Source: Hyalangium minutum
Lineage (GTDB): Bacteria > Myxococcota > Myxococcia > Myxococcales > Myxococcaceae
Length of the DNA stretch: 64,000 bases
Assembly: GCF_000737315.1 (NCBI RefSeq)
Contig: NZ_JMCB01000012.1
Location: forward strand, 62,001-126,000
Direction of reading: 5' to 3'
Made by a program: the position numbers and the translations under genes. Shown here in pieces: positions 40,102-64,000 of the stretch (position 1 is its first letter; each line of letters opens with the position of its first letter). The notes below the pieces were generated by a model. It did not search any database, was not told where the DNA came from, and worked only from the letters and a program-made list of their open reading frames with translations.

Positions 40102-42543
40102 ATGAAGAAAGCCTCCACTCCCCTGCTGTTGGCGCTGGGGCTGGCGCTGCTCGCGGGCTGCTCTGCCTCTTCCGGCACGGGCTCGGCACAGCTTGCTGTC
40201 TCGTTGCCCCAGGCGCTCTCCGCCTCCGTCTCCCGCGTCTCGGTCACTGTCAGCGCCGCGGACATGCCCTCTGTCTCCGTGGACCTCGTCTTCTCCCACA
40301 GCGTCTGGGGCGGCTTGCTCAGCTCGCTGCCCGCGGGCTCCCACCGCACCTTCCTGGCCCGGGCCTTCGACGCCTCCGGCACCCTTCTCTATGAGGGTTC
40401 TGCCTCCGGCATCTCCCTCTCCGCCAACCAGACCGCCCTGGTCGCCCTGACCCTTCAACAAGTCGATGCACCGCCTCCGTTCCAGAACGCGGCCCCGTTC
40501 ATCGACTCCCTGGCCGCCGCTTCCACCTCGGTAACCGCGGGCGGCACCCTCTCCCTGGTGGCCGCCGCACATGACCCGAACGCGGGCGATACGCTCACCT
40601 ACGCCTGGTCCTCCACCGCGGGCTCCTTCTCCTCGGCCACCGCTGCCTCCACCTCGTGGACGGCGCCTTCCACCCTCGGCCTTCAGACCCTCACCCTCAC
40701 CGTCACGGACTCCAGGGGCCTTTCCTCCAGCGTCTCGCTGGCCATCTCCGTCACCCCGAGCCCGGCGCTGGGCAGCGCGCAGATCACCATCTCCTTCAAT
40801 CTCTCTCCCCAGGTGGCCTCCCTCAGCGCCACGCCCACCCGGCTGGCTGTCGGACAGGCCACGGCGGTCTCCGTCTCGGCCTCGGACCTGGATGGCGACA
40901 GCCTGTCCTACGCTTGGAACGCCTCGTGCGCGGGCTCCTGGGCCAATGCCACCTCCAGCGCGGCCCAGTTCACTCCGTCGGCCCTGCCTTTCGGCACCTG
41001 CAACAACTGCCGCCTCACCGTTACCGTCTCTGACGCGCGCGGCGGGCAGACCACCGGCACCGTGGCCTTGTGCGTCAGCAACATCCCCACCACCAACCAC
41101 CTCCAGCCTGTCATCGTCTCCGCCTCCAGCTCGTCAGGCACCGCCACGGCCGGACAGGTGATCACCTATGAGGTGATGGCCAGCGACCCCGAGGGTTCCG
41201 CGCTCTCCTTCTCCTGGACGGCCACCACTGGCTCTCTGAGCACCGCGGCCACCACCGCCTCCTCCAGCCGCATCACCTGGACGGCTCCGCCCTGTGTCCG
41301 GAGCAGCCCGGTTCCTGAGCTCACCGCCACCATCACCAACGCCTTCCACCTGACAGCCACCCAGAGCTTCTCCATCACCGGGCTACCGCTCTGTCCTCCG
41401 CCGAGCTGGGCCTCGACAGGCGCCATGCTCTCGCCTCGCGGCTACCACACGGCCACGCTGCTGCCCAACGGCAAGGTCCTCGTCGCGGGGGGCAGCCACC
41501 AGGGGCGCCTCGCGACGGCGGAGCTGTACGATCCGGCCTCGGGTACCTGGAGCGCGACAGGTCCCATGCTCGCGCCTCGTGACGGCCACACGGCGACGCT
41601 GCTGCTCAACGGCAAGGTCCTCGTCGTGGGGGGCAACCCCCAGGGGCTCCTCGCGACGGCGGAGCTGTACGATCCGGCCACTGGCACCTGGAGCGCGACA
41701 GGACCCATGCTCGCACCTCGTGACGGCCACACGGCGACGCTGCTGCTCAACGGCAAGGTCCTCGTCGCGGGGAGCTGGGGCTACAGCGGGGCTCCAGCGA
41801 CCACGGAGCTGTATGACCCGGTCTCAGGCACCTGGAGCGATGCTGGCAGACTGCTCCCGGCTCGCTCCTACGCCATGGAGACGCTGCTGCCCAACGGCAA
41901 GGTGCTCATCGTGGGGGAAGACGCGCAGGGCAACCTCTCCCCGGTGGAGTACGACCCGGCCGGGGGCACCTGGAGCGACACAGGTGGCACGACCTCTGGC
42001 CGTTGGAACTACACGGCGACGCTGCTGCCCAGCGGGCGACTGCTCATCACTGGAGGGTTCGGCAACCCCGGGCTCCTCGCGGCGGCGGAAGCGTACGACC
42101 CGGCCTCGGGCACCTGGAGCGCTGCCGGCACCATGTCCTTGCATCGCTACTCCCATACGGCGGTGCCGCTGCGCTCCGGCAAGGTGCTCGTCTTCGGGGG
42201 AGACGGCTGGGGCGGCGATCTCGCGGCGGCCGAGGTGTACGACCCGGCGTCGAGCACCTTCGGCCCCGCGGGTACCATGCTGACACGCCGCACCTCTCCT
42301 TGGGCGATGGTGCTGCCTGACGGCCGGGTGCTCATCGCGGGGGGATACGACCTCCAGTCCCATTTGCCTATGGCCGCGGCGGAGGAGTACGACCCGGCCA
42401 CGGACACCTGGAGCCCCGCAGGCGCCATGCTCACGCCTCGCAATGGCTACAGGGTGACGTTGTTGCCCGACGGCAGGGTGCTCGTCACGGGTGGATCCGG
42501 CACCACCGGCGGTCTCACGCAGGCGGAGCTCTACACACCTTGA
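40102..42543 (+). CDS. Kelch array gene 1: lipoprotein, 4 Ig-like domains plus 8 Kelch repeats
   Basis: Lipobox LAGC; CNNC.LTVTV.D.RGGQ; eight TATLL.NGKVL-type repeats; ends AELYTP. Confidence 0.93.
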   Translation: MKKASTPLLLALGLALLAGCSASSGTGSAQLAVSLPQALSASVSRVSVTVSAADMPSVSVDLVFSHSVWGGLLSSLPAGSHRTFLARAFDASGTLLYEGSASGISLSANQTALVALTLQQVDAPPPFQNAAPFIDSLAAASTSVTAGGTLSLVAAAHDPNAGDTLTYAWSSTAGSFSSATAASTSWTAPSTLGLQTLTLTVTDSRGLSSSVSLAISVTPSPALGSAQITISFNLSPQVASLSATPTRLAVGQATAVSVSASDLDGDSLSYAWNASCAGSWANATSSAAQFTPSALPFGTCNNCRLTVTVSDARGGQTTGTVALCVSNIPTTNHLQPVIVSASSSSGTATAGQVITYEVMASDPEGSALSFSWTATTGSLSTAATTASSSRITWTAPPCVRSSPVPELTATITNAFHLTATQSFSITGLPLCPPPSWASTGAMLSPRGYHTATLLPNGKVLVAGGSHQGRLATAELYDPASGTWSATGPMLAPRDGHTATLLLNGKVLVVGGNPQGLLATAELYDPATGTWSATGPMLAPRDGHTATLLLNGKVLVAGSWGYSGAPATTELYDPVSGTWSDAGRLLPARSYAMETLLPNGKVLIVGEDAQGNLSPVEYDPAGGTWSDTGGTTSGRWNYTATLLPSGRLLITGGFGNPGLLAAAEAYDPASGTWSAAGTMSLHRYSHTAVPLRSGKVLVFGGDGWGGDLAAAEVYDPASSTFGPAGTMLTRRTSPWAMVLPDGRVLIAGGYDLQSHLPMAAAEEYDPATDTWSPAGAMLTPRNGYRVTLLPDGRVLVTGGSGTTGGLTQAELYTP

Positions 42544-42590
42544 GCCGCGCGAGCCGTTGGACCTCCTTCCTCAGACACGAGAACTCCCTC

Positions 42591-44915
42591 ATGAACAAAA
42601 GCTCCCTCTCCCTGCTGCTGGCGCTGGGGCTGGCGCTGCTCGCGGGTTGCTCGCCCTCTTCCTCCGGCACCGGCTCGATTCAGTTCGCCGTCGCGGTGCC
42701 CCAGGCGCTCTCCGCCTCCGTCTCCCGCGTCTCCGTCACTGCGCTCGCCGCCGATTTCCCCTCCGTCTCGGTGGACCTTGTCTTCGCCAACGGCTCCTGG
42801 GGCGGCACGCTCGGCGACCTCCCCGCAGGCGCCCATCGCACCTTCCTGGCCCGGGCTTTCGACGCTTCGGGCACTGCGCTCTTCGAGGGCTCTGCCTCCG
42901 GCGTCTCCATCGCCGCTGGCCAGACCGCTCTGGTCGCCATCACCCTCCAGCAAGTCAACGCGCCTGCCTTCCAGAACGAAGCCCCGATCATTGACTCCCT
43001 GACGGCCTCCTCCACCTCGGTGTCCGTGGGCAACTCCCTCTCGCTCGCCGCTTCCGCGAGCGATCCCAATCCCGGAGACACGCTCTCCTACGCCTGGACC
43101 GCCACCGCAGGCTCCTTCTCCTCGGCCACCGCGGCCTCCACCTCGTGGACGGCTCCGGCCTCCACCGGCATTCAAACCCTCTCCCTCACCGTGACGGACT
43201 CCCGGGGCCTCTCCTCCTCCATCACGGTGGTGGTCAACGTCCTCCCCTCGGGGGAGCAGGGCCAGGCGCAGCTCTCCATCTCCTTCAATTCCACCCCTCG
43301 CGTGGATTCCCTCAACGCCACGGCCTCCCAACTGGCCGTGGGGCAGAGCACCGCGGTGTCCGCCTCGGCCTCGGATCTGGATGGCGACAGCCTCACCTAT
43401 TCCTGGAGTAACTCGTGCGCGGGCTCCTGGGCCAACGCCGCCTCCCGCGCCGCGCAGTTCACTCCCTCCGAGCTGCCTGCCAGCACCTGCAACAACTGCG
43501 ACCTGACCGTCACCGTCTCCGACGGGCGCGGCGGGCAGACCACCGGCACCGTGGCGCTGTGCGTCCGAGCGCCTCCCGAGCTCAATCACCTTCCTCCTCT
43601 CATTCTCTCCGCCTCCGGCAGCTCGGGTACGGCCACGGCGAGGCAGGTGCTCACCTATGAGGTGGTGGCCAGCGACCCCGAGGGCTCCGCGCTCTCCTTC
43701 TCCTGGACAGCCACCGCCGGCTCGCTGGGCACCGCGGCCGACAGCGCCTCCTCCAGCCGCATCACCTGGACGGCCCCTGGCTGTGTCAGTGAAGGCACTC
43801 CTCTGGCCATCACCGCCACCATCACCAACGCTTTCCACCTGACGGCCACGAAGAGCTTCTCGGTCACGGGGTTGCCTGTCTGTGTCCCCCCGAGCTGGAC
43901 CTCGACGGGCTCCCTGGTTTCGCCTCGTTACGGCCACACAGCGACGCTGTTGCCCAGCGGCAAGGTCCTCGTCGTGGGGGGCTGGGGTTCCAGCAGTACC
44001 TCCCTGGCGACCGCGGAACTGTATGACCCAGCGACGGGCACCTGGAGCGCAACAGGCTCCCTGCACGGATCGCGCGTGAACCACACGGCGACGCTGCTGA
44101 GCAACGGCCAAGTGCTCGTCGCGGCAGGGACAGGATCCGGCAGTCCCGGAATGTACGGGACGGCGGAGGTGTACGATCCCGCCTCGGGTACCTGGCGCGA
44201 GACAGGCCTCCTGACCTTGCCTCGCGTCTTCGCCTCCGCGACCCTGCTGCTTGATGGCCAGGTGCTTCTCACGGGAGGCATCAACGAGAGGTCAGGCTTC
44301 CTCGCGGCGGCGGAGGTCTTGGACCCGTCCGCGGGGATAGGCACCTGGAGAGCGACCGGCTCCATGGCCTCGGCGCGCTTCTTCCACACGACAACACGGC
44401 TGCCGAACGGCAAGGTGCTCGTTGCGGCCGGACTCGACTCGGGTGTCCCTTCCACCACGGCGGAGGTGTACGACCCAGCCTCGGGCTCTTGGAGTGCGAC
44501 GGGCTCCATGGGCTCGCCTCATTCCTGGCACGCGGCGACGCTGCTGAACAACGGCAGGGTGCTCGTCACGGGGAGCGCCTACGGGCCACCGCCGCAGGTG
44601 ACAGCAGAGGTGTACGACCCGGCTTCGAACTCTTGGAGCGCGGCTGCTTCCATGCTCACGCCTCGCGCGTACCACTCAGCGACGCTGCTGAAGAACGGCC
44701 GAGTGCTCATCGCAGGGGGTGATGGCGGCCCGCTCGCGCCCGCAGAGGAGTACGACCCCACCTCGGATACCTGGAGCGCTGCGGGCTCCATGCTCACGCC
44801 TCGCAGCGGCACCACGGCGACGCTGCTGCTCAACGGCCAGGTCCTGTTCGTGGGGGGCGTCTCGGGCAGCGATCCCCTCTCGACGGCGGAGCTGTACACG
44901 CCCGGCACTCCTTAA
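42591..44915 (+). CDS. Kelch array gene 2: stalk plus 7 Kelch repeats
   Basis: MNKSSLSLLLALGLALLAGC; same architecture. Confidence 0.93.
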   Translation: MNKSSLSLLLALGLALLAGCSPSSSGTGSIQFAVAVPQALSASVSRVSVTALAADFPSVSVDLVFANGSWGGTLGDLPAGAHRTFLARAFDASGTALFEGSASGVSIAAGQTALVAITLQQVNAPAFQNEAPIIDSLTASSTSVSVGNSLSLAASASDPNPGDTLSYAWTATAGSFSSATAASTSWTAPASTGIQTLSLTVTDSRGLSSSITVVVNVLPSGEQGQAQLSISFNSTPRVDSLNATASQLAVGQSTAVSASASDLDGDSLTYSWSNSCAGSWANAASRAAQFTPSELPASTCNNCDLTVTVSDGRGGQTTGTVALCVRAPPELNHLPPLILSASGSSGTATARQVLTYEVVASDPEGSALSFSWTATAGSLGTAADSASSSRITWTAPGCVSEGTPLAITATITNAFHLTATKSFSVTGLPVCVPPSWTSTGSLVSPRYGHTATLLPSGKVLVVGGWGSSSTSLATAELYDPATGTWSATGSLHGSRVNHTATLLSNGQVLVAAGTGSGSPGMYGTAEVYDPASGTWRETGLLTLPRVFASATLLLDGQVLLTGGINERSGFLAAAEVLDPSAGIGTWRATGSMASARFFHTTTRLPNGKVLVAAGLDSGVPSTTAEVYDPASGSWSATGSMGSPHSWHAATLLNNGRVLVTGSAYGPPPQVTAEVYDPASNSWSAAASMLTPRAYHSATLLKNGRVLIAGGDGGPLAPAEEYDPTSDTWSAAGSMLTPRSGTTATLLLNGQVLFVGGVSGSDPLSTAELYTPGTP

Positions 44916-44935
44916 GTCCCTGGAGCCATTCCTTC

Positions 44936-47260
44936 ATGAAGAAGACTCCCTCTCTCCTGCTGTTGATGCTGGGGCTGGCGCTGCTCGCGGGCTGCTCTGC
45001 CTCTTTCTCTGACACGGGCTCGGCACAGCTTGCCGTCCTCCTCCCTCGCTCGGACTCCTCCTCCATCTCCCGCGTCTCGGTCACCGCCAGTGCGGCGGAC
45101 CTCCCCTCGGCTTCCGTGGACCTTGCCTCCTCCCACGGACTTCAGGGAGGGAACCTCGGCAACCTCCCCGCAGGTGCCAACCGCTCCTTCCTAGCGGAGG
45201 CCTTCGACGCCGCGGGCAACCGGCTCTTCCAGGGCTCCGCCTCCGGCGTTCCCATCTCCGCTGGCCAGTCCGCCTTCGTGGCCATCACCCTCCAAGCGCT
45301 CAACGCGCCTCAGTCCTCGCTGAATGAGCCCCCGGTGATTGACTCGCTGGTGGCCTCCTCGACTTCCGTGGCCGTGGGTGGCTCCATCTCTTTGCAGGCC
45401 ACGGCCCATGGACTTCACCCGGAGGAGCCCCTCACCTACGCCTGGTCTTCTTCCGCAGGTTCCTTCGCCTCGGACTCCGAGGCCTCCACCTCGTGGACGG
45501 CGCCTTCCACTCCTGGCGCGCAGACCCTCACCGTCACCGTGACGGACTCTGGAGGCCTCTCCTCCAGCGCCTCCGTGGACCTCGAGGTTCTCTCGAGCGA
45601 TGGACACGGTTCGGCGCAAATCACTGTCTCCTTTAATAGCGCTCCCAGCGTGGCGTCCCTCAGCGTCACGGCCTCGCAGCTCGCGGTGGGGCAGAGCACT
45701 TCGGTGTCCGCCTCGGCCTCGGACCTGGATGACGACAGCCTCTCCTACGCCTGGAGCGCCTCGTGCGCGGGCTCCTGGGCCAACGCTTCCTCCAGCGCCG
45801 CGGAGTTCACCCCCTCCGCGCTGCCCGGTGGCTCTTGCAACAACTGCGACCTGACCGTCACCGTCTCCGATGGGCGCGGCGGGCAGACCACTGGCACCTT
45901 GGCCCTGTGTGTCAGCACGAGCGCCCCTCCCAACCGCTTCCCTCCCCGCCTCCTCGGCTCCTACAGCTCCGCGTTTCCCTGGGAGCTCATCTCCGCAGGA
46001 CAGGTGCTCACCTACGAGGTCGTGGCCACCGATCCCCAGGGCTCCGCGCTCTCGTTCTCCTGGGCCGCCAACACCGGCTCGCTGGGTACACCGGCCTCCA
46101 GCGCCTCCCAGAGCCGCACCACGTGGACGGCCCCCACGTGTGCCAGTGAGGGCACCACTCCTGCCATCACCGCCACCTTCACCAATGCCTTCAGCCTGCG
46201 TGACTCGAAGCGCTTCGAGGTCATAGGACTGCCCACCTGCGTCGTCTCGGCCTGGACCGCGACGGCCGCCATGGGCACGGCGCGCCGAGACCCCACGGCG
46301 ACGCTGCTGTCCGACGGCAAGGTGCTCGTCTCGGGGGGACAGAACACCGCCGCTCTCGCCTCGGCGGAGGTGTACACGCCGGCTTCGGGCACCTGGCGCG
46401 CGACGGGCCCTCTGGCCGCCGCTCGCTACAGTCACGCGGCGGCACCGCTGCCCCATGGCAGCGTGCTCGTCTCGGGGGGCTACAACAGTACGAACGGCTA
46501 CCTCGCGGCAGCGGAGCTGTACAACCCGGCCTCCAACACCTGGAGCGCGACGGGCCCCATGCTCTCCCCGCGCTACCTCCACACGGCGACGCCGCTGCCG
46601 GACGGCAAGGTGCTCGTCACCGGCGGCTATAACAGCGCGAGCGGCTATCTGGCGACAGCCGAGGTGTACAGCCCGGCCTCCGGAACCTGGAGCGCGACGG
46701 GGGCCATGAGCACCCTGCGCGGATACCACACGGCCACATTGCTGAATAACGGCAAGGTGCTCGTCGCAGGGGGACGCGGTAACAGCAGCAGCGCCTTCCT
46801 CGCAACGGCGGAGCTGTACGATCCGGCCACCGGCACCTGGAGTTCCACCGGCGCCATGTCCTCGCCTCGCGCGAGCCACACGGCGACGCTGCTGCCTGAC
46901 GGCAAGGTGCTCATCTCGGGGGGAACCAACCGGAGCACCTACTTGGCGACGGCGGAGCTGTACGATCCGGCCACAGGCACCTGGAGCGCCACCGGCTCCA
47001 TGTCCACGGCGCGCGCTAGCTCCGCAGCGGGGGTGATGTCCAACGGCAAGGTGCTCATCGCCGGAGGCATCCGGAGCACCACCTATCTGTCCACGGCCGA
47101 GGCCTACAACCCCAGCACGGGCACCTGGACCTCCGCTGGCTCCATGGGCTCGGCCCGCGGGTATCACGCGGTGGTGGCACTGCCCAACGGCAAGGTGCTC
47201 GTGGCGGGAGGCAACACCGGCAGCACTCCGCTCGCGACGGCCGAGCTGTTCACGCCCTGA
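44936..47260 (+). CDS. Kelch array gene 3: stalk plus 7 Kelch repeats
   Basis: MKKTPSLLLLMLGLALLAGC; same architecture. Confidence 0.93.
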   Translation: MKKTPSLLLLMLGLALLAGCSASFSDTGSAQLAVLLPRSDSSSISRVSVTASAADLPSASVDLASSHGLQGGNLGNLPAGANRSFLAEAFDAAGNRLFQGSASGVPISAGQSAFVAITLQALNAPQSSLNEPPVIDSLVASSTSVAVGGSISLQATAHGLHPEEPLTYAWSSSAGSFASDSEASTSWTAPSTPGAQTLTVTVTDSGGLSSSASVDLEVLSSDGHGSAQITVSFNSAPSVASLSVTASQLAVGQSTSVSASASDLDDDSLSYAWSASCAGSWANASSSAAEFTPSALPGGSCNNCDLTVTVSDGRGGQTTGTLALCVSTSAPPNRFPPRLLGSYSSAFPWELISAGQVLTYEVVATDPQGSALSFSWAANTGSLGTPASSASQSRTTWTAPTCASEGTTPAITATFTNAFSLRDSKRFEVIGLPTCVVSAWTATAAMGTARRDPTATLLSDGKVLVSGGQNTAALASAEVYTPASGTWRATGPLAAARYSHAAAPLPHGSVLVSGGYNSTNGYLAAAELYNPASNTWSATGPMLSPRYLHTATPLPDGKVLVTGGYNSASGYLATAEVYSPASGTWSATGAMSTLRGYHTATLLNNGKVLVAGGRGNSSSAFLATAELYDPATGTWSSTGAMSSPRASHTATLLPDGKVLISGGTNRSTYLATAELYDPATGTWSATGSMSTARASSAAGVMSNGKVLIAGGIRSTTYLSTAEAYNPSTGTWTSAGSMGSARGYHAVVALPNGKVLVAGGNTGSTPLATAELFTP

Positions 47261-47313: not shown

Positions 47314-48039
47314 ATGAAGAGAATCGCCACGCACCTGCTATTGGCCTGTGTGCTGCCGTTGCTCGCGGGCTGTGAGCCCTCCTCCTCGGAGATGGGCTCG
47401 GCCCAGCTCGCGGTATCCATGCCCCAAGCGCTCTCGGCCTCGGTCTCGCGCGTCTCCATCACCGCCCTCGGCGCGGAGGTGCCCGCCGTCTCCGTGGATC
47501 TCGCCCTGTCTGGGAGCACCTGGGGCGGCATGCTCGGCAACCTGCCTGCCGGCTCCCACCGTACCTTCCTGGCCCAGGCCTTCGACGCCGCGGGCACCCA
47601 GCGCTACGAGGGCTCCGCTTCGGGCATCTCCATCGCCGCGAACCAGTCCACCCTGGTCGCCATCACCTTGCAGCAGGTCAACGCGCCGCCTCCCTTCCAG
47701 AACGAGGCCCCGATCATCGACTCGCTGACGGCCCCCACCCCCTCGGTGGTGACGGGTGGAGTGCTCACCCTGGAGGCCTCCGCTCATGATCCCAACGCGG
47801 GCGACACGCTCACGTACTCCTGGTCTTCCGCTGCGGGAACCTTCACCTCGGCCTCCTCCGCATCCACCGTGTGGACGGCGCCAGCCACCACCGGGCTGCA
47901 GACCCTCGCCCTCACCGTGACGGACTCCCAGGGCCTCGCCTCGACGCTCTCCCTGACCGTCAGCGTCACCCCGAGCCTCGTGCTGGGCATTGCCCACGCC
48001 AGCGGTCCTCGCGAGACGGCGGATCTGTCCACCCCCTGA
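47314..48039 (+). CDS. Kelch array gene 4: headless derivative (signal plus 2 Ig domains fused to a family-like C-terminus)
   Basis: Lipobox LAGC; first two stalk domains intact; ends ETADLSTP, resembling TAELYTP. May be a pseudogene. Confidence 0.8.
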   Translation: MKRIATHLLLACVLPLLAGCEPSSSEMGSAQLAVSMPQALSASVSRVSITALGAEVPAVSVDLALSGSTWGGMLGNLPAGSHRTFLAQAFDAAGTQRYEGSASGISIAANQSTLVAITLQQVNAPPPFQNEAPIIDSLTAPTPSVVTGGVLTLEASAHDPNAGDTLTYSWSSAAGTFTSASSASTVWTAPATTGLQTLALTVTDSQGLASTLSLTVSVTPSLVLGIAHASGPRETADLSTP

Positions 48040-53971: not shown

Positions 53972-56289
53972 CCATGCCCCATCCCTCTCACTGTTTCCGC
54001 TCCCCTTCTTCCCACTTGCTGCTGGCGCTGACGCTGGCACTGCTCACGAGCTGCTCGCCCCCTTCGGAGATCGGCTCGGCTCAGTTTGTCGTCTCGGTGC
54101 CTCAAGCCCTCTCCGCCTCCATCTCCCGCGTCTCGGTCACAGCCAGCGCCGCCGACTTCCCCTCCTTCTCGGTGGATCTGGCTTCCTCCAATGGCTCCTG
54201 GGGCGGACTGCTGGGCAACCTCGCCGCGGGCTCCAACCGTTCCTTCCTCGCGCAGGCCTTCGATGCCTCCGGCACCAAGCTCTACGAGGGCTCCGCCTCG
54301 GGCGTCTCCATCGCCGCGGACCAGACCGCGCTGGTCGCCATCACCCTCCAGCAGGTCAATGCGCCGCCTCCCTTCCAGAACGCGGCGCCCGTCATCGACT
54401 CGCTGACGGCCTCCTCCACCTCCGTGGCCGCAGGCGGCTCCCTCTCTCTTCAGGCCTCCGCGCATGATCCGAACGCGGGCGACACGCTCTCCTACGCCTG
54501 GTCCTCCACCTCCGGCTCCTTCTCCTCGGCTTCCGCAGCTTCCACCTCGTGGATCGCTCCGGCCTCTTCCGGCACTCAGACCCTCACCTTCACCGCCACG
54601 GACTCCCGAGGCCTTGCCTCTCGCGTCTCTCTGACCATTAACGTCACCCCGAGCGGGGGGCACGGGGACGCTCAGATCTCCATCTCCTTCAACACCTCTC
54701 CCGTCGTCGCCTCCATCAGCGCCACCGCTTCTCAGCTGGCTGTGGGACAAAGCACCTCCGCCTCCGCCTCCGCCTCGGACTCGGACGGCGACAGCCTCTC
54801 CTACTCCTGGAGTGCCTCCTGTGCAGGCACCTGGACCAACGCCTCCTCCAGCTCCGCCCAGTTCACTCCCTCCGCTGTGCCCACGGGCTCCTGTAACAAC
54901 TGCGACCTCACCGTCTCTGTCTCTGACGGCCGCGGCGGGCAGACCACCGGCACCCTCGCCCTGTGCGTCTCCCCTCCTTCCTCCAGCCACGTCAGTCCCG
55001 TTATCACCTCCTTCTATCGCTCCTCGAACACCGCCACGCCCGGCCAGGTGCTCACCTTTGATGTGAGCGCCAGCGACCCCGAGGGCTCCGCGCTCTCCTT
55101 CTCCTGGACGGCCACCTCCGGCTCGCTGGGTACCCCCGCCCACACGGCCTCCTCCAGCCGCATCACCTGGACAGCGCCCTCCTGTGCCTCTTCCCTCTCG
55201 CCCCCGAGCATCACCGCCACCGTCACCAATGCCTTCAACCTGACGGCCGCGAAGAGCTTCACCGTCACGGGGCTACCGTCCTGTGGGTGGACCTCGACGG
55301 GCTTCATGACCGAGGGGCGCTCTGGGCACGCATCCACCCTGCTCCTCTCTGGCAAGGTGCTCGTCACGGGCGGAGCCATTGTCCTCGCCGGAAGGGCCAC
55401 GGCGGAGGTGTACGACCCGGACGCGGGCACCTGGAGCACCACGCGTTCCATGATCTCCGCCCGCTTTGTCCACACGGCGACGCTGCTGCCCAATGGCAAA
55501 GTGCTCGTCGCGGGGGGATACGACCGGGGCTACATGGCGACGGCAGAGGTGTACGACCCGGCCACGGGCACCTGGAGCGCGACGGGCTCCATGGCCACGC
55601 CTCGTGGCTACCACACGGCGACGCTGCTTCCGAACGGCAAGGTGCTCGTCGCGGGGGGATGGTTCACAGGCCCAGGCCCCCTCACGTCGGTGGAGGTGTA
55701 CGACCCCGCCTCGGGCACCTGGAGCACTGTCGCCTCGATGCCCTCCGCCCACGGCGAGCACACGGCGACCCTGCTGAACAACGGCAATCTCCTGGTCGCT
55801 GGCGGACACCTCGATGGGCATCGGAGCAACGCCCACGCGGCGGTGGAGGTGTACGACCCGGCTGCGAACTCCTGGAGCACGACCGCTCCCATGACTTCGC
55901 GACGTGGGGGCCACGCGGCGGCGCTTCTGGCCAACGGCAAGGTCCTCGTCACAGGGGGAACCCACGGTGGCAGCGCTCTGGCGGCGGCGGAGGTGTACGA
56001 CCCGGCCTCAGGCACCTGGAGCGCTGCGGGCTCCATGCTCTCCTCGCGTGACATGCACAAAGCGACGCGGCTGCCCAACGGCCAGATTCTCGTCACAGGG
56101 GGCCAAAACGGGAGCTATCTCGCGACAGCGGAGCTGTTTGACCCGGCTTCAGGCTCCTGGAGTGCAGCCCCCCTCATGGCTTCCACTCGCCGCGAGCACA
56201 CCGCGACGCTGCTGAACAACGGCAAGGTGCTCATCTCCGGCGGATACAACGGCGGCTATCTCACGGCGGCGGAGCTGTACACGCCCTGA
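53968..56289 (+). CDS. Kelch array gene 6: stalk plus 7 Kelch repeats
   Basis: ATGA overlap with gene 5; lipobox LTSC. Confidence 0.93.
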   Translation: MTMPHPSHCFRSPSSHLLLALTLALLTSCSPPSEIGSAQFVVSVPQALSASISRVSVTASAADFPSFSVDLASSNGSWGGLLGNLAAGSNRSFLAQAFDASGTKLYEGSASGVSIAADQTALVAITLQQVNAPPPFQNAAPVIDSLTASSTSVAAGGSLSLQASAHDPNAGDTLSYAWSSTSGSFSSASAASTSWIAPASSGTQTLTFTATDSRGLASRVSLTINVTPSGGHGDAQISISFNTSPVVASISATASQLAVGQSTSASASASDSDGDSLSYSWSASCAGTWTNASSSSAQFTPSAVPTGSCNNCDLTVSVSDGRGGQTTGTLALCVSPPSSSHVSPVITSFYRSSNTATPGQVLTFDVSASDPEGSALSFSWTATSGSLGTPAHTASSSRITWTAPSCASSLSPPSITATVTNAFNLTAAKSFTVTGLPSCGWTSTGFMTEGRSGHASTLLLSGKVLVTGGAIVLAGRATAEVYDPDAGTWSTTRSMISARFVHTATLLPNGKVLVAGGYDRGYMATAEVYDPATGTWSATGSMATPRGYHTATLLPNGKVLVAGGWFTGPGPLTSVEVYDPASGTWSTVASMPSAHGEHTATLLNNGNLLVAGGHLDGHRSNAHAAVEVYDPAANSWSTTAPMTSRRGGHAAALLANGKVLVTGGTHGGSALAAAEVYDPASGTWSAAGSMLSSRDMHKATRLPNGQILVTGGQNGSYLATAELFDPASGSWSAAPLMASTRREHTATLLNNGKVLISGGYNGGYLTAAELYTP

Positions 56290-56348: not shown

Positions 56349-58622
56349 ATGCCCATCCACCCACGGCGCTCCTGTCTGGCAGGAGCGCTGCTGCTCTCCG
56401 TCTTTGCCTGCACCCCCTCTCAGCCCACGGGCTCCGTTCAGTTCGCGGCCTCTACCCAGCAGGCGCTCTCCGCCAGTGACGTCACCCGCGTCAAGGTGAC
56501 GGTCTCTGCTTCGGACATGTCCTCTCTCGTCGTCGACATGGCCCAAACAAACGGCTCCTGGGGCGGCCTCATCGGCAACATTCCCGCGGGCACCCACCGC
56601 TCGTTCCTCGCAGAGGCCTTTGACACCTCGGGCACCCTGCGCTTCCAGGGCTCCACCTCCGCCGTCACCATCACCGCCAACCAGACCACCGCTGTCGCTC
56701 TCACGCTTCAGGAGCTGGCTCTCCCTCCGCCCTACTCCAATGAGGCGCCGATCATCGACTCCCTCGTCGCCTCCTCGACTTCTGTCCAGGCCGGTGGCTC
56801 TCTTTCCCTCACCGCCACGCTTCATGATCCCAACGCTGGGGACACCCTCACCCTGGCGTGGACGACCTCCGGCGGCACCTTCTCCGCGCCCGCCGCCGCC
56901 ACCACTTCCTGGACGGCCCCGGCCTCCCCCGGCCTCCAAACCTTCACCTTCACCGTGACGGACTCTCAGGGGGCAGCCGTCTCCGTTTCTCTGACTGTCA
57001 ACGTCGTCTCCGGTGCCTCCACCGGCAATGCGGCCCTCAACGTCTCCTTCAACCTGTGGCCGGTGGTCTCCAAGGTCTCTGCCTCTCTCAACCGCCTGGA
57101 TGCGGGACAGTCCACCACCGTCTCCGCGCTGGCCTCGGATACGGATGGCGATGCGCTCTCCTATCAGTGGACGGCCTCCTGCCCGGGAACCTGGACGAAT
57201 GCGACCTCGAGTGCCGCATCCTTCGTCCCCTCCTCCGTGCCAGCAGGCGCCTGCAACAACTGCCGGCTCACCGTCACCGTTCAAGACGGCCGAGGAGGAC
57301 AGACCACCGGCTCGCTCAACCTCTGTGTCGCCTCTTCCTCCACCGAGCACTTCCTTCCCACTTTCACCCACTTCTATCAGTCCGCCCCCTCCGCCTCTCC
57401 AGGCCAGACGGTCTCCTTTGGCGTCACCGCCATGGACTCCCAGGCCAGTTCCCTGACGTTCACCTGGACGGCCAACACCGGCTCGCTGGCCGTAGCGCAG
57501 AACACCGCCAGCACCAGCCAGGTCCATTGGACGGCCCCTGCCTGCGCGGTGACGGGTGTTCCTCCCACCGTCACTGCCACCGTCACCAATGCCTTTGGCC
57601 TCTCGGCCACCATCCCCTTCTCTCCCCCAGGCCTGCCGACGTGCACGCCCGGCTGGGCCACCACGGGCGCCCTGGCCGCAGCCCGCTCGGGCTCCACAGC
57701 CACTCTGCTCCCTTCTGGCAAGGTGCTCATCACGGGGGGCTACAACGGTGGCGCCCTCGCGACGGCAGAACTGTACGACCCGGGCTCGGGCACCTGGAGC
57801 ACCCTCAGCCCCATGATTTCGCCTCGCGGGTCCCACACGGCGACGCTGCTCCCCAATGGCAAGGTCCTCGTCGCGGGGGGCAACAACGGTGACGCCATCG
57901 CGGCGGCCGAAGTGTATGACCCGGCTTCGAATACCTGGAGCGCGACCGCCCCCATGCTCTCGCGTCGCGATGGCCCCTCGGCGACGCTGCTGGCCAATGG
58001 CAAGGTGCTCGTCGCAGGGGGATGGATTCGAAGCCCTCTCGCATCGGCGGAGGTGTACGACCCGGCCTCGGGCACCTGGAGCGCGGTCGGCTCCATGAGC
58101 TCACCCCACTGGGCCCACAAGGCGACGCTGCTGCCCAACGGCAAGGTGCTCGTCACGGGGGGTTCCCTCAGTGGGAATATGAACGCCAGCGACGCGGCGG
58201 CGGACGTGTACGACCCGGCCACGGGCACCTGGAGCGCGACCGCCTCGATGACCTCGCCCCGTATCGGCCACACGGCGACGCTGTTGACCAACGGCAAGGT
58301 GCTCGTCACGGGGGGATACGGCGGCACCTACTTCGCGACGGCAGAGGTATATGACCCGGCCGCTGGCACCTGGAGCGCCACGGCCTCCATGGCCTCACCT
58401 CACGTCTGGCACACGGCGACGCTGCTGACCAACAGCAAGGTGCTCATCGCGGGGGGCTCGACGGCGGAGGTGTACGACCCGGCCACGGGCACCTGGAGCG
58501 CCGCAGGCTCTCTGGCCTCAGCTCGCGAGTCCCACACGGCCACGCTGCTGACCAACGGCAAGGTGCTCGTCTCCGGAGGAGCCACCCATGGCTCCCTTGC
58601 GGCGGAGCTGTACACGCCCTGA
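56349..58622 (+). CDS. Kelch array gene 7: stalk (type B) plus 7 Kelch repeats
   Basis: MPIHPRRSCLAGALLLSVFAC. Confidence 0.93.
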   Translation: MPIHPRRSCLAGALLLSVFACTPSQPTGSVQFAASTQQALSASDVTRVKVTVSASDMSSLVVDMAQTNGSWGGLIGNIPAGTHRSFLAEAFDTSGTLRFQGSTSAVTITANQTTAVALTLQELALPPPYSNEAPIIDSLVASSTSVQAGGSLSLTATLHDPNAGDTLTLAWTTSGGTFSAPAAATTSWTAPASPGLQTFTFTVTDSQGAAVSVSLTVNVVSGASTGNAALNVSFNLWPVVSKVSASLNRLDAGQSTTVSALASDTDGDALSYQWTASCPGTWTNATSSAASFVPSSVPAGACNNCRLTVTVQDGRGGQTTGSLNLCVASSSTEHFLPTFTHFYQSAPSASPGQTVSFGVTAMDSQASSLTFTWTANTGSLAVAQNTASTSQVHWTAPACAVTGVPPTVTATVTNAFGLSATIPFSPPGLPTCTPGWATTGALAAARSGSTATLLPSGKVLITGGYNGGALATAELYDPGSGTWSTLSPMISPRGSHTATLLPNGKVLVAGGNNGDAIAAAEVYDPASNTWSATAPMLSRRDGPSATLLANGKVLVAGGWIRSPLASAEVYDPASGTWSAVGSMSSPHWAHKATLLPNGKVLVTGGSLSGNMNASDAAADVYDPATGTWSATASMTSPRIGHTATLLTNGKVLVTGGYGGTYFATAEVYDPAAGTWSATASMASPHVWHTATLLTNSKVLIAGGSTAEVYDPATGTWSAAGSLASARESHTATLLTNGKVLVSGGATHGSLAAELYTP

Positions 58623-58662
58623 GCCCTGCATGTCATCGGGCTCCATTTCTAAAGGACACGTC

Positions 58663-60963
58663 TTGCCCATCCACCCCCGTTTCTCCTGTCTCGTCACAGT
58701 GCTGCTGCTTGCTCTCTCCGCCTGCACCGAGCAGCCCACGGGCTCCGTCCAGTTCGCGGTCTCGGTGCCCCAGGCCCTCTCTGCCAGCGACGTCACCCGC
58801 GTCCAGGTGACCGTCTCCGCCTCGGACATGTCCTCGCTCGTGGTGGAGCTGGCCAAGACCCACGGCACCTGGGGCGGGCTCGTCGGCAACATCCCCGCGG
58901 GCGTCAACCGCGCCTTCCTGGCCGAGGCCTTCGACGCCTCTGGCGCCCTGCGCTTCCGGGGCTCCACCTCCGCCGTCACCATCAATGCCGACCAGACCCT
59001 CGCTGTGGCCCTCACCCTTCAGGAGCTGGCGCCCGCGCCTCCCTTCTCCAACGAAGCGCCCATCATCGACTCACTGGTGGCCTCTTCGACTTCCGTCCAG
59101 GCGGGCGCTTCTGTCTCCCTGACCACGACGGTGCATGATCCCAATGCGGGCGACACCCTCGCCCTGGCGTGGACCGCCACAGGCGGCACTTTCTCCGCGC
59201 CCACGGCCGCCACCACCACCTGGACGGCTCCAGCCTCGCTCGGCGTGCAGACCCTCACCTTCACCGTGACGGATTCTCAACGCGTGGCGGTCTCCGTCTC
59301 CCTGGCCGTCAACGTCGTCCCGGGTACTTCCACCGGCAGCGCGGCCATCAACGTCTCCTTCAACCTCTGGCCCGTCATCTCCCAGGTCTCCGCATCGCCC
59401 AGCCGCCTCGATGCCGGGCAGTCCACCACCGTCTCCGCCCAGATCTCCGATGCGGATGGCGACGCGCTCACCTACCAGTGGACCGCCTCCTGCCCCGGCA
59501 CATGGACGAATGCGGCCTCGAGTACCGCTTCCTTCGTTCCTTCCTCCGTCCCGGCGAGCGCCTGTAACAACTGCCGCCTCACGGTCACCGTCCAGGACGG
59601 GCGCGGCGGGCAGACGACCGGCGACCTCAACCTCTGCATCACCACCTCCTCCACCGAGCGCTTCCCTCCCAACATCATCAACTCCTTCCAATCCGCCGCC
59701 TCCGCCGCTCCTGGGGAGACAGTCTCCTTTGACGTCACCGCCATGGACGCTCAGGCCAGCTCGCTGACGTTTGCCTGGACAGCCAGCATCGGCGTGCTGG
59801 GGACGCCTGCCACCGACGCCTCCACCAGCCACATCACCTGGACGGCGCCCTCCTGTGTTCCCTCGGGGGCGACGCCCACTGTCATGGTCACCGTCACCAA
59901 CGCCTTCAACTTGACGGCCACCCGGAGCTTCACAGTGACGGGGCCGCCGGTCTGTACCGTGGGCTGGGCCTCGGCGGCCTCCATGGCCACGACTCGCCGC
60001 GAGCACACGGCGACGCTGCTGCCCAACGGCAAGGTCCTCGTCGCGGGAGGGTACAACGGTGGCCACTTGGCGACGGCGGCGCTGTACGACCCAGCCACAG
60101 GCACCTGGAGCACGACCGGCTCCATGATCATTCCTCGGAGCCTCCACGTGGCGGTCCTGCTGAACAACGGCAAGGTGTTCATCGTGGGAGGCACCAACGG
60201 GAGCCCTCTCCTGTCAGCGGAGGTGTACGACCCGGCCACGGGCACCTGGAGCGCAGCGGGGGTCATGAGCGCGGGGCGCTGGTTTCACACGGCCACGCTG
60301 CTGCCCACTGGCAAGGTCCTCGTCGCGGGCGGACACAACTACAACAACGGCTACCTGCCGACGGCAGAGCTGTACGATCCGGCCTCGAACACCTGGAGTA
60401 CGACGGCTTCCATGACCGTGGGGCGCCACCGCCACACGGCGACGTTACTGCCCAACGGCAAGGTGCTCGTCGCTGGAGGCTCCGACACCTTCTATCACGC
60501 GACGGCAATGGTGTATGACCCGGCCACGGGCACCTGGAGCGCCACGGGTTCCATGGCCTCTCCCCGACAGATACACACGGCGACGCTGCTGCCCAACGGC
60601 AAGGTCCTCGTTGCCGGAGGGCAGAACGGCAGCACCAGCTATCTGGCGACAGCCACGGTGTACGATCCGGCCACAGGCACGTGGAGCACGACGGGCGCCA
60701 TGGCCACCACCCGCCAATACCATACGGCAATCCTGCTGAGCAACGGCAAGGTGCTCGTCGCGGGCGGACAAGGCAGCAGCGATGCCCTCTCCAGTGCAGA
60801 GCTGTACGACTCCGCCACCGGCACCTGGAGCTCCGCAGGCTCGATGCCCTCCGCTCGCCAGCTTCATGCGGCGACGCTGCTGCCCAACAACAAGGTGTTC
60901 GTCACGGGTGGCTACAGCGCCAGCAGCAGTTATCTCGCGGGGACGGCGCTGTACTCGCCGTGA
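58663..60963 (+). CDS. Kelch array gene 8: stalk (type B) plus 7 Kelch repeats
   Basis: TTG start inferred from AAAGGA RBS and homology to gene 7 (PIHPR); lipobox LSAC. Confidence 0.9.
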   Translation: MPIHPRFSCLVTVLLLALSACTEQPTGSVQFAVSVPQALSASDVTRVQVTVSASDMSSLVVELAKTHGTWGGLVGNIPAGVNRAFLAEAFDASGALRFRGSTSAVTINADQTLAVALTLQELAPAPPFSNEAPIIDSLVASSTSVQAGASVSLTTTVHDPNAGDTLALAWTATGGTFSAPTAATTTWTAPASLGVQTLTFTVTDSQRVAVSVSLAVNVVPGTSTGSAAINVSFNLWPVISQVSASPSRLDAGQSTTVSAQISDADGDALTYQWTASCPGTWTNAASSTASFVPSSVPASACNNCRLTVTVQDGRGGQTTGDLNLCITTSSTERFPPNIINSFQSAASAAPGETVSFDVTAMDAQASSLTFAWTASIGVLGTPATDASTSHITWTAPSCVPSGATPTVMVTVTNAFNLTATRSFTVTGPPVCTVGWASAASMATTRREHTATLLPNGKVLVAGGYNGGHLATAALYDPATGTWSTTGSMIIPRSLHVAVLLNNGKVFIVGGTNGSPLLSAEVYDPATGTWSAAGVMSAGRWFHTATLLPTGKVLVAGGHNYNNGYLPTAELYDPASNTWSTTASMTVGRHRHTATLLPNGKVLVAGGSDTFYHATAMVYDPATGTWSATGSMASPRQIHTATLLPNGKVLVAGGQNGSTSYLATATVYDPATGTWSTTGAMATTRQYHTAILLSNGKVLVAGGQGSSDALSSAELYDSATGTWSSAGSMPSARQLHAATLLPNNKVFVTGGYSASSSYLAGTALYSP

Positions 60964-61016
60964 GCCCCCGAGTCCTCCGGTTCATTGACAGATTCATCCA
61001 CCTCAAGGATTGCCAC

Positions 61017-63347
61017 ATGAAGAGAACTTCCTCTTACCTGCTGCTGGCGGTGGGACTGGCGCTGTTCGCCGGTTGCTCCGACCCGTCTTCTTCCAACACC
61101 GGCTCTGCGCAGCTGGCGGCCTCCGTGCCGCAGGCCCTCTCCGCCAGCGACGTCACCCGCGTGAAGGTGACCGTCTCCGCCGCGGGCATGACCTCCCTCG
61201 TGGTGGACCTGGCCAAGAGCAACGGCACCTGGGGCGGCGTCATCGGCAGCATCCCCGCCGGCGCCAACCGCACCTTCCTCGCCGAGGCCTTCGACTCCAC
61301 TAACGCCAAGCGCTTCCAGGGGCAGGTCTCCAGCATCACCATCACCGCCAACCAGACCACCGCCGTGGCCCTCACACTCCAGGAGCTGGTGCCTCCGCCG
61401 CCGTATGGCAATGACGCGCCCCTCATCAACTCCGTGGTGGCAAACGTCACCACCGTGCAGACGGGCGGCGCCATCTCTCTGACCGCGACGGCGCAGGATC
61501 CCAACGCGGGGGACACCCTCACCTATCTGTGGACGGCCACTGGAGGCACCTTCTCCACCCCGGCCGCCGCGAACACCTCCTGGACGGCTCCGGCTTCGGC
61601 CAGCATCCAGACGCTCACCCTGACCGTGACGGACTCCCAGGGCGCGGCCGCGTCGATCTCCCTCGCCGTCAACGTCATCGCGGGTACCTCCGCTGGCACG
61701 GCGAACCTCTCCATCACCTTCAATCTCTTCCCCGTGGTCTCCAAGGTCACCGCGTCGCGCACCCGCGTGGACGTGGGCCAGCCCATCGCCCTCACCGCCA
61801 CCGCCTCGGATGCGGACGCGGATGCGATGACCTACCAGTGGGGCGCCGTGGGCTGCACCGGCACGTGGAGCAATGCGACCTCCAGCGCCGCCACGTTCGT
61901 GCCCTCGGCCATTCCGTCCAGCGCGTGCCACAACTGCCAGCTCACCGTCACGGTGCAGGACGGGCGAGGAGGCCAGGGCTCCGGGACAATCAACCTCTGC
62001 GTGGCCGCCGCCACCACCGAGCGCTTCCCGCCGCTCTTCACCAACTCCTACCAGTCAGCCACCACCACCGCGCCGGCGCAGACGGTGAGCTTCAACGTCA
62101 CCGCGCTGGATCCGCAGTCCAGCGCCATGACGTTCTCCTGGGTCTCGAGCATCGGTACGCTGGGCACGGCGCAGAACACCGCCAGCACCAGCCAAGTGGT
62201 GTGGACGGCGCCCTCTTGCGCGGTAACGGGCGTTCCCGTCTCCATCACGGCGTTCGCGACCAACGCGTATGGCGTCTTCGCCTCGAAGACCTTCTCTGTC
62301 ACGGGCCTGCCCGCGTGCGCGTCCGGATGGAGTACCGGGGCCTCGATGCTCACGAGCCGCTCGAACCACAGCGCCACGCTGCTGAGCTCCGGCAAGGTCC
62401 TGGTTGTAGGGGGCTACAATAACAACTACCTCGCCTCGGCGGAGCTGTATGACCCGGCCACCAACACCTGGTCCGCCGCGGGCGTGCTGACCTCGCGCCG
62501 CCGGTACCACACTGCGACCCTGCTGCCCTCGGGCAAGGTCCTCATCGCCGGCGGCACCGATGGCGGAGTCCTCGCCTCAGCGGAGCTGTATGACCCGGTC
62601 ACCAACTCCTGGTCCGCCGCGGCCCCCATGGGCACCACGCGCCAGAACGCCACGGCGACACTGCTCGCCTCGGGCAAGGTGCTCGTCGCGGGCGGCATCA
62701 ATAGCGGCTTCCTCAACTCGGTGGAGCTGTATGACCCAGCCACCAACTCCTGGTCCAACGCGGCGCCCATGAGCACGATGCGCACCGGCCACACCGCCAC
62801 CTTCCTCCCGGCCTCCGGCAAAGTGCTCGTCACGGGCGGCAACACCTACAGCGGAGTCACCAACTCGGTGGAGCTGTACAACCCCACCACGAACTCCTGG
62901 ACCACGGTGGCCCCGCTGAACACAGCCCGCAACGTCCACGCTGCGGCCGCGCTCGCTTCCGGCAAGGTGATCGTCACAGGGGGTTATAACGGCGCCTCCT
63001 ACTTCAACAACGCCGAGGTCTACGACCCGTCCACCAACACCTGGACCTCCGGGAGCACCTTCGGTGCGAGGCGCCAGGACCACACCGCCACCGCACTCGC
63101 TTCCGGCAAGGTCCTCCTCACGGGCGGGTACTACAGCTACTACAACGACGACGAAGACAACGGCACCGTCTTCCACGACGCCACGAGCCTCTACGACCCG
63201 GGCTCCAACACCTGGTCCTCCGGAGGAACGCTGCCGGGGGCTCGCGCGTACCACACGGCCACCCTGCTCCCCTCGGGCCGCGTCTTCGTCACCGGGGGCT
63301 ACAGCAACAGCGGCTTCCTGGGGACCTCGGCGCTCTACACGCCCTGA
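61017..63347 (+). CDS. Kelch array gene 9: stalk (type B) plus 7 Kelch repeats
   Basis: MKRTSSYLLLAVGLALFAGC; start trimmed from the ORF track. Confidence 0.93.
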   Translation: MKRTSSYLLLAVGLALFAGCSDPSSSNTGSAQLAASVPQALSASDVTRVKVTVSAAGMTSLVVDLAKSNGTWGGVIGSIPAGANRTFLAEAFDSTNAKRFQGQVSSITITANQTTAVALTLQELVPPPPYGNDAPLINSVVANVTTVQTGGAISLTATAQDPNAGDTLTYLWTATGGTFSTPAAANTSWTAPASASIQTLTLTVTDSQGAAASISLAVNVIAGTSAGTANLSITFNLFPVVSKVTASRTRVDVGQPIALTATASDADADAMTYQWGAVGCTGTWSNATSSAATFVPSAIPSSACHNCQLTVTVQDGRGGQGSGTINLCVAAATTERFPPLFTNSYQSATTTAPAQTVSFNVTALDPQSSAMTFSWVSSIGTLGTAQNTASTSQVVWTAPSCAVTGVPVSITAFATNAYGVFASKTFSVTGLPACASGWSTGASMLTSRSNHSATLLSSGKVLVVGGYNNNYLASAELYDPATNTWSAAGVLTSRRRYHTATLLPSGKVLIAGGTDGGVLASAELYDPVTNSWSAAAPMGTTRQNATATLLASGKVLVAGGINSGFLNSVELYDPATNSWSNAAPMSTMRTGHTATFLPASGKVLVTGGNTYSGVTNSVELYNPTTNSWTTVAPLNTARNVHAAAALASGKVIVTGGYNGASYFNNAEVYDPSTNTWTSGSTFGARRQDHTATALASGKVLLTGGYYSYYNDDEDNGTVFHDATSLYDPGSNTWSSGGTLPGARAYHTATLLPSGRVFVTGGYSNSGFLGTSALYTP

Positions 63348-63382
63348 GCACCCGGCCCCCCATCGCTCCCAGGAAATCCATT

Positions 63383-64000
63383 ATGAGAACTCCCTTCTCT
63401 CGCGGGCTGCTGGCGCTCGGGCTGGTGCTGGCTGCCAGCTGTGCTGCCCCTTCCTCTTCCAACACCGGCTCGGTCCAGTTCGCGGTCTCGGTGCCCCAAG
63501 CCCTCTCCACCAGCGACATCACCCGCGTCAAGGTGACGGTCTCTGCTGAGGACATGGCCTCCCTCGCCATCGAGCTGGCCAAGACCCATGGCGTCTGGGG
63601 TGGCATCATCGGCAACATCCCCACAGGCTCCCAGCGCGTTTTCCTCGCGGAGGCCTTCGACGCCGCTGGCGTCAAGCGCTTCCAGGGACAGACCTCCGGC
63701 GTCACCCTCAACGCCAACCAGATCACTGCCGTCGTCCTGACCCTTCAGGAGCTGTCACCCCCTCCACCCTACTCCAACGAGGCACCCGTCATTGACTCCC
63801 TCGTGGCCTCCTCCACGTCTGTCCAGACGGGAGGCTCCCTCTCCCTGACAGCCACCATTCATGATCCCAACGCAGGAGACACCCTCACCTCCGCGTGGGC
63901 GGCCTCTGGTGGATCCTTCTCTGCTCCCACGACGACCTCCTCCTCCTGGACGGCTCCGGCGTCTCCAGGGGTGCACATGGTCACCTTCACTGTGACGGAC
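63383..64000 (+). CDS. Kelch array gene 10, 5' part (runs off the window end; not in ORF track)
   Basis: MRTPFSRGLLALGLVLAASCAAPSSSNTGSVQFAVSVPQALSTSDITRVKVTV...SNEAPVIDSLVASS; its head is not visible in the window. Confidence 0.9.
   Translation, partial: MRTPFSRGLLALGLVLAASCAAPSSSNTGSVQFAVSVPQALSTSDITRVKVTVSAEDMASLAIELAKTHGVWGGIIGNIPTGSQRVFLAEAFDAAGVKRFQGQTSGVTLNANQITAVVLTLQELSPPPPYSNEAPVIDSLVASSTSVQTGGSLSLTATIHDPNAGDTLTSAWAASGGSFSAPTTTSSSWTAPASPGVHMVTFTVTD

Follow-up and report, generated by a model that had tools for sequence, protein, structure and literature searches.

A window of 64,000 nucleotides from Hyalangium minutum DSM 14724 (JMCB01000012.1:62001–126000; the contig accession JMCB01000012.1 is named in PMC5441343) carries, from position 40102 onward, an array of ten paralogous genes, K1 to K10, all on the plus strand and separated by intergenic gaps of 0–59 bp. 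According to the data presented here this array is, with a probability of about 0.6, a conserved set of lipoprotein adhesins or receptors of the outer membrane, each with its own fixed specificity, in which a stalk of four Ig-like domains (D1–D4) presents a Kelch propeller. A first-pass annotation, made from the letters alone, had described ten same-strand genes with gaps of about 60 bp or less, and this was confirmed. It had also assumed at least ten copies continuing past the window: the array does run for about 1.65 kb beyond it, but ends there with K10, and consists of exactly ten genes, the next one encoding an unrelated 238-aa lipoprotein.

Gene starts were placed at the start codon nearest 5′ of each lipobox, the latter being the motif, defined as [LVI][ASTVI][GAS]C, with which a lipoprotein signal peptide ends. 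A lipobox was found in all ten copies (LAGC, LMGC, LTSC, VFAC, LSAC, FAGC, AASC), 17–23 residues past a plausible start. Eight of the genes are of normal size (about 740–810 aa), one encodes a giant of 1966 aa (K5L, 48071–53971) and one is a remnant (K4t, 47314–48039). A four-domain stalk with an eight-bladed Kelch head is encoded by K1 (40102–42543), and a stalk with a seven-bladed head by K2 (42591–44915, C-terminus ELYTPGTP), by K3 (44936–47260), which was the copy used for modelling, and by K6 (53968 or 53974–56289), whose start overlaps or abuts the K5L stop. Stalk and Kelch head are likewise present in K7 (56349–58622), K8 (58630 or 58663–60963) and K9 (61017–63347), the most divergent of the copies. 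Only the 5′ part of K10, the last array gene, lies within the window (63383–64000), and its complete product of 760 aa was read from the flanking locus L081 (12367–14649). The start of K8 is ambiguous: ATG at 58630 gives a 32-residue signal peptide, and TTG at 58663 is preceded by an AAGGA motif. Judging from homology to the MPIHPR start of K7, the TTG is probably the true one.

The stalk is about 410 residues long and the propeller is placed distally. In the alignment all intact copies have the cysteine pattern SC-x-G-x-W ... C(N/H)NC ... LC, followed by WTAPxC ... GLPxC; the six conserved cysteines of the stalk are located in D3 and D4 and would form disulfides. The lipobox, the four Ig-like domains and the Cys pattern previously ascribed to every complete copy thus hold, while the uniformity of the set does not, K4t being a remnant and K5L carrying an extension of 1200 aa beyond its propeller. 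Pfam gave strong Kelch matches together with Big_9 and PKD; for Kelch_1 each of the nine intact copies in the window scored 115–191 bits (cut-off 20.1), and the repeats have the features of the family, i.e. units of 44–56 residues in tandem, each containing a GG doublet, a hydrophobic strand and Tyr and Trp residues that are conserved. K3 was modelled with AlphaFold2 on 94 family sequences, and the resulting model, with a mean predicted local distance difference test score (pLDDT) of 87.5, consists of four beta-sandwich domains (residues 27–121, 134–219, 238–327 and 338–428, the stalk as a whole being 27–428) and a propeller (439–773) of seven four-stranded blades, where pLDDT is 92–98, mostly 93–98, per ten-residue block. 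The propeller in this model is closed by the N-terminal strand near W440, which serves as strand 4 of the last blade. The terminal AELFTP of K3 forms the third strand of that blade, which explains why the gene stops there. Similar ends were registered in other copies (AELYTP, TALYSP, SALYTP), so that a Kelch propeller with an AELYTP-like end, as described at first reading, is corroborated with one amendment: seven blades are found in standard copies and eight in K1.

Among the nine full copies mean pairwise identity is 60% for the stalk (range 48–77%) and 53% for the head (range 44–62%), and the initial formula of a constant stalk with a variable head was overstated in this respect. A sharp contrast does exist, but inside the head. 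Head positions were classed by the strand assignments of the model (DSSP) and not by their variability, BC being the loop between strands 2 and 3 and DA the loop between strands 4 and 1. Between paralogues the BC and DA loops taken together are 38% identical, whereas the value is 62% for AB and CD loops and 68% for strands. In the Kelch topology BC and DA loops share one face, which is used by Keap1 for Nrf2 binding, and one can assume that the ligand of each array protein would bind to the propeller face formed by the same loops. The stalks fall into two clades, K1/K2/K3/K5L/K6 and K7–K10, while almost no clade structure was found in the heads. Much of this flat signal is conditioned by the resemblance of blades to each other across positions and genes: irrespective of both, their identity reaches 70–77%. 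Concerted evolution of stalks combined with orthologous heads was hinted at by neighbour-joining trees only; the differences between best matches amount to a few percent (for instance, 74 versus 73% for stalk and 56 versus 61–64% for head), are not robust, and we do not claim such a process.

The stalk is shared with proteins bearing quite different heads. A search with the K3 stalk retrieved proteins that cover 92–99% of it at 41–53% identity and have other C-terminal modules, namely RCC1, fibrinogen_C, Laminin_G_3, DUF4215, ALK/LTK-GRD (glycine-rich), TARSH_C, Lcl_C and TSP1. In each of these relatives the head starts at residue 430–460, and most of them have a lipobox; headless stalk proteins of 430–440 aa also exist. 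The stalk profile compared with 1.84 billion cluster representatives gave 1613 matches at E ≤ 1e-30, and in most of the best 150 of these 1613 the stalk is N-terminal, the total length being 400–1600 aa. Among 66 stalk-bearing representatives that were scanned, heads were of Kelch (12), RCC1 (6), LamG (6), ALK-GRD (3) and fibrinogen-like (3) type, and about half had no Pfam head. We define here a “stalked” lipoprotein family by the presence of a lipobox, a D1–D4 stalk and a C-terminal head, and all intact array copies belong to it, as they align over D1–D4 with invariant Cys. The family appears to be large and taxon-restricted (Myxococcaceae/Archangiaceae), a single, putatively lipid-anchored Ig-like stalk being combined with many alternative binding heads, and its Kelch subfamily has expanded to arrays of up to ten genes or more. 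The idea of a common chassis is broader than the first-pass annotation saw. Foldseek matched the stalk model (pLDDT 86.5) to the Ig/cadherin-like domain strings of SbsB, cadherins, invasin and contactins. Bacterial adhesins and S-layer proteins (invasin, SbsB) and cadherin ectodomains likewise use a beads-on-a-string beta-sandwich stalk to present a distal binding module; the array proteins, however, would be anchored by an N-terminal lipid rather than by a beta-barrel or SLH domains, their head is a propeller, and at 11–15% identity the likeness is an architectural analogy and not family membership.

Relatives with full stalk and Kelch head were found in Corallococcus, Archangium, Hyalangium, Stigmatella, Cystobacter, Vitiosangium and Pyxidicoccus, while the Kelch part alone is 50–55% identical to proteins from many soil phyla. 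At least three further family members are encoded on other H. minutum contigs, and clear orthologues of K3 are present in Archangium, Corallococcus and two metagenome arrays. On a metagenome contig of 40.5 kb, genes for a histidine kinase and then an RCC1 lipoprotein precede at least eight Kelch copies, the first three of which are the best matches to K1, K2 and K3 in this order (67, 68 and 68%). The ELYTPGTP end of K2 recurs in its positional counterpart, the second Kelch gene, of this metagenome array (L083), which is one sequence with L084 (99.995% identity), the pair being uninformative for strain variation. In Corallococcus praedator the gene after that for an RCC1 lipoprotein is a K3 orthologue (68%); then come a giant of 2049 aa, a gene for the stalk alone and another Kelch copy. 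In H. gracile a single copy adjoins an SDR. Thus, an RCC1 gene stands immediately 5′ of the Kelch array in three lineages; the two other RCC1 lipoproteins are 64% and 73% identical to the product of the window gene at 37676–40030. A comparison of the locus for variation in copy number and order, proposed at the first reading, gave a divided answer: copy number differs between lineages from 1 to at least 10, while the order RCC1, K1, K2, K3 is kept in another lineage. The locus is old, part of its gene order is kept and its copy number varies, which amounts to birth-and-death evolution and not to rapid turnover. The 2049-aa member of C. praedator (L001, 12266–18412) combines one stalk with some 25 strand motifs of Kelch type and may hold several propellers in a single chain, and relatives of about 1080–1100 aa, common in Corallococcus and Archangium, are probably double-propeller forms.

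Lipoproteins of Myxococcus xanthus with Lys at position +2 are located in the inner membrane and those with Ala at +7 in the matrix, while its outer-membrane lipoproteins have no conserved sorting signal (PMC3222651). Of 94 family members 92 have a lipobox; position +2 is occupied by S, A or T and never by Lys (0/92), and Ala was found at +7 in 2/92. As Lys never occurs at +2, the lipobox Cys would be acylated and the protein sorted to the outer membrane, which is the default predicted location. Most proteobacterial outer-membrane lipoproteins face the periplasm, however, and from a lipobox by itself one cannot conclude that a protein is exposed on the surface. The array proteins may then face the periplasm and serve the envelope, motility or matrix-export machinery as scaffolds or spacers, not as outward receptors, an explanation that we consider unlikely. 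Their four-domain stalk is long enough to span the periplasm, and purifying selection on orthologues, documented below, would suit such a role. Yet ten paralogues with differing binding loops are hard to square with a housekeeping function, the fibrinogen_C, LamG, TSP1 and Lcl_C heads of sister proteins are typical of extracellular binding, and the variation of copy number from lineage to lineage is not favourable to it either.

For a repertoire of outward-facing adhesins or receptors, the interpretation that we prefer, the most plausible candidate ligands would be surface polymers or surface proteins of prey, kin or matrix, because lectin-like and extracellular-matrix-like heads occur on the same stalk. 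Myxobacteria hunt and aggregate by cell contact, and to our knowledge only few of their surface recognition proteins have been described. If exposed on the surface, the array proteins would be candidates for prey, matrix or kin adhesion and would provide a natural scaffold on which binding modules can be displayed. One can go further and suppose a pattern-recognition repertoire of a predator, in which Myxococcaceae/Archangiaceae would use a surface chassis with interchangeable heads (Kelch, RCC1, fibrinogen-like, LamG, TSP1 and the C-type-lectin-like Lcl_C) of those types that serve innate recognition and matrix binding in animals. Each Kelch head would then correspond to a different molecule of prey, kin or matrix, and jointly they would set the adhesion targets of the swarm. 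This extension is speculative, and we regard it as quite improbable in its full form.

The age of the copies was estimated from synonymous divergence (pS) and the mode of selection from the ratio of nonsynonymous to synonymous divergence (omega), both obtained per domain by Nei-Gojobori counts. Between paralogues pS is 0.3–0.55 in every domain of every pair, and the duplicates are therefore old. Omega for paralogues is 0.1–0.4 in D2 and D3, 0.5–0.7 in D4 and head, and 0.7–0.9 in the BC/DA loops. The value of about 0.9 in DA loops, the much greater divergence of heads than of stalks in the closest pairs (77% stalk versus 55% head identity for K7–K10, 74% versus 54% for K1–K2) and the blade duplications in K1 and K10 could be taken as traces of a rapidly diversifying arms-race system directed at phage, prey or kin, with heads positively selected or gene-converted. 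Such a system is very unlikely. With pS at the above level everywhere there are no young conversion tracts, and per-domain synonymous divergence revealed no recently converted segments among array copies; the repeat search found neither inverted repeats nor inter-gene repeats above about 84% identity, the highest direct repeat (88%) being inside K1. The near-identical donor–acceptor repeats or inverted repeats that characterize cassette systems, gene conversion or diversity-generating retroelements were thus absent (a reverse transcriptase was not searched for), and each copy has its own start and lipobox, unlike silent cassettes. Recent gene conversion or cassette exchange between genes was rejected on the basis of the repeat search and synonymous divergence, duplications being found only within K1 and K10.

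The same conclusion can be drawn, with more weight, from P0002, an orthologue of K3 with equal length and 83% identity, which is encoded on a metagenome contig between a K2-like end (ELYTPGSP and stop) and a K4-like start. For this pair pS is 0.21–0.38, and omega is 0.31 in D1, 0.29 in D2, 0.13 in D3, 0.50 in D4 and 0.33 in the head. Its BC and DA loops are 79.6% identical versus 80.7% for strands, with a loop omega of 0.29. As the loops are conserved to the same degree as strands, the putative binding face is apparently maintained once a paralogue exists. Together with the K1–K3 order collinear in another lineage, this speaks against an arms-race locus. The per-domain dN/dS check suggested in the first-pass annotation gave values of 0.13–0.50 across the domains of the K3 orthologues, loops included, and its word “diversifying” is not supported by old paralogues free of conversion tracts and standing in conserved order; the sequences point to an old, conserved repertoire. 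Invariant content combined with uniform purifying selection had been named there as the outcome that would refute a diversifying receptor set: selection is indeed almost uniformly purifying, but copy number differs between lineages. The set goes back to old tandem duplications; now and then a copy was lost (K4t), a blade duplicated (K1, K10) or domains added (K5L), and each array copy is now under purifying selection. The array would in this case hold distinct fixed specificities and no arms-race cassette system.

Foldseek aligned the K3 head with Kelch domains of Keap1, KLHL and NS1-BP at target-normalised TM-scores of 0.76–0.83, and designed symmetric Kelch proteins (SAKe) were the top PDB sequence matches of the head because its blades are unusually alike. 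The eukaryotic substrate-recognition propellers of KLHL, Keap1 and NS1-BP share repeat motif and fold with the array heads, are their best sequence and structure matches, and bind via the BC/DA loop face, i.e. where the array paralogues differ; the array proteins, in turn, have seven or eight blades rather than six, are predicted to be extracytoplasmic lipoproteins and lack BTB/BACK. No named NCBIfam family was assigned to the array proteins. Relatives are publicly named LivK leucine-specific periplasmic binding protein, branched-chain amino acid ABC transporter or N-acetylneuraminic acid mutarotase, and otherwise just “kelch repeat-containing protein”; domain content supports none of the names LivK, ABC transporter and mutarotase. 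The name mutarotase, partial matches to Pfam Glyoxal_oxid_N (34–58 bits) and the occurrence in myxobacteria of the galactose-oxidase-like developmental protein FbfB (PMC4937300) may suggest that the Kelch domains are enzymes, either radical copper oxidases of the galactose oxidase, glyoxal oxidase or GlxA type or NanM-like mutarotases. This is highly improbable, since the scores are far under the cut-offs of the family models (88 and 77 bits versus 800 for GlxA, NF052501; 48.7 versus 416 for PRK14131, NanM; 38.2 versus 256 for TIGR03547, YjhT), Pfam NANM matches single repeats only and at or below its cut-off (25–45 bits versus 45), the head is structurally closest to peptide-binding Kelch domains, and the Pfam scan revealed no C-terminal oxidase domain completing the copper site, for which the gene, stopping at strand 3 of the last blade, leaves no place. 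Galactose oxidase, GlxA and Stigmatella FbfB have in common with the array proteins a seven-bladed Kelch propeller and myxobacterial occurrence. The initial view of exported binding proteins on a common chassis, and not enzymes, is supported by the lipobox in 92 of 94 members, the adhesin-like fold of the stalk, swappable heads, similarity to KLHL/Keap1 and the failure of GlxA and NanM models.

Other known systems resemble the array in part. Bacteroidota have SusE/F-like surface glycan-binding lipoproteins, which are also lipid-anchored, multi-domain, non-catalytic paralogous sets, but they have no sequence relationship to the array, and no SusC/D-type transporter was found near it. The same features are characteristic of the Leptospira SBBP/LipL53 family of beta-propeller lipoproteins, likewise without sequence relationship; the sole match to the LipL53 model, a weak one (35 bits, cut-off 400), is the neighbouring gene for a 469-aa protein. 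Myxococcus TraA is reportedly a single polymorphic kin-recognition locus, whose product has a variable domain of PA14-like type and is anchored by MYXO-CTERM. It is similar to the array proteins as a myxobacterial cell-envelope protein whose variable recognition domain sits on a stalk that contains Cys, but there are ten fixed paralogues in the array, with a lipobox anchor, a Kelch head and no hypervariation in orthologues. PA14 and MYXO-CTERM were absent from the Pfam and NCBIfam scans, and the array proteins end with AELYTP right after the last blade. Literature combining Kelch with myxobacterial terms contained no description of the array family and yielded only MXAN_5265/FbfB (a Kelch protein of glyoxal-oxidase type), MXAN_7222 (“kelch domain protein” in a transcriptome table) and a vesicle RCC1-fold protein.

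Several circumstances weigh against the repertoire of surface adhesins or receptors that we favor. Lipidation and membrane location are predictions from sequence, surface exposure and any ligand are conjectural, and the sorting rule was derived from M. xanthus and not from Hyalangium. Placement of the variable loops on one propeller face relies on textbook Kelch topology and DSSP strand assignments in a model. The orthologue omega comes from one pair and a simple Nei-Gojobori count, and synonymous sites are near saturation between paralogues. Finally, a terminator-like hairpin is located only 28 bp 5′ of the K1 start, and a promoter of the array is not evident.

This hairpin (40045–40074, plus strand; 13 pairs, 10 of them G-C, then TTTCTT) stands between the RCC1 stop and the K1 start and is the sole convincing one. 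No terminator-like sites were found between array genes, and the overall count of such sites is that of shuffled controls. As intergenic terminators are lacking, the ten genes K1–K10 are probably co-transcribed, and the hairpin may dampen transcription that reads through from the RCC1 gene. The product of the latter (37676–40030, plus strand; lipobox LNGC) is a companion lipoprotein with an RCC1 propeller on a distantly related Ig/PKD stalk, which is only 26% identical to that of the array (E 7e-4) and has no Cys pattern. The mature protein has Ala at +7, the M. xanthus matrix signature. RCC1-fold protein MXAN_0889 was found among vesicle-specific proteins of M. xanthus (PMC4158809).

Four copies deviate from the standard plan. 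In K1 segments 41511–41646 and 41652–41787 are 88% identical in DNA and encode adjacent blades 2 and 3; this recent duplication (41511–41787) of one blade accounts for the eight-bladed head. In K10 two blades with another blade between them show 85% identity at the protein level (L081, about 13.7–14.4 kb), which is also a blade duplication. K4t (241 aa) retains a lipobox, D1 and D2, i.e. the first approximately 225 codons, and about the last 12 codons (ending in ADLSTP and stop); the loss of about 1.6 kb inside the gene, in frame, joined the end of D2 to the final part of the gene, and the tail ACGGCGGATCTGTCCACCCCCTGA aligns with ACGGCGGAGCTGTACACGCCCTGA of K2 and K6. A K4-like gene starts at the matching relative position in the metagenome contig L086 (2634–3161), which ends before the full extent of this gene is visible. 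In K5L the stalk and Kelch head (to about 50366) are followed, on the plus strand, by a linker with ten Cys (50390–50533), a TIG domain (50537–50779), two FN3-like domains (50777–51395) and four Laminin_G_3 domains (51395–53968).

Downstream of K10 the unrelated gene for a 238-aa lipoprotein is followed in L081 by an SDR, a CitMHS transporter and PEPCK; overall the array is surrounded by two-component kinases, a flavin adenine dinucleotide (FAD) oxidoreductase, DUF1501, SDR, CitMHS and PEPCK genes. A functional tie to the flanking genes was considered and rejected, as the neighbours, except for the RCC1 gene, are not conserved across the compared loci. The 469-aa protein mentioned above is encoded at 35859–37268, contains TSDGG-type repeats and is the one weakly matched by the model of SBBP beta-propeller lipoproteins, so that three propeller types, SBBP-like, RCC1 and Kelch, are encoded consecutively. 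Long spurious open reading frames occur in every frame of the window because of its high G+C content, and antisense ones of up to 786 aa overlie real genes (for example, 37604–39964 on the minus strand) and are not genes. G+C is 64–72% across the window save for one lower patch at 12–14 kb (0.58 versus about 0.68 elsewhere), and inside this patch a 1174-aa Ser/Thr kinase fused to WD40 repeats is encoded on the minus strand (11346–14870).

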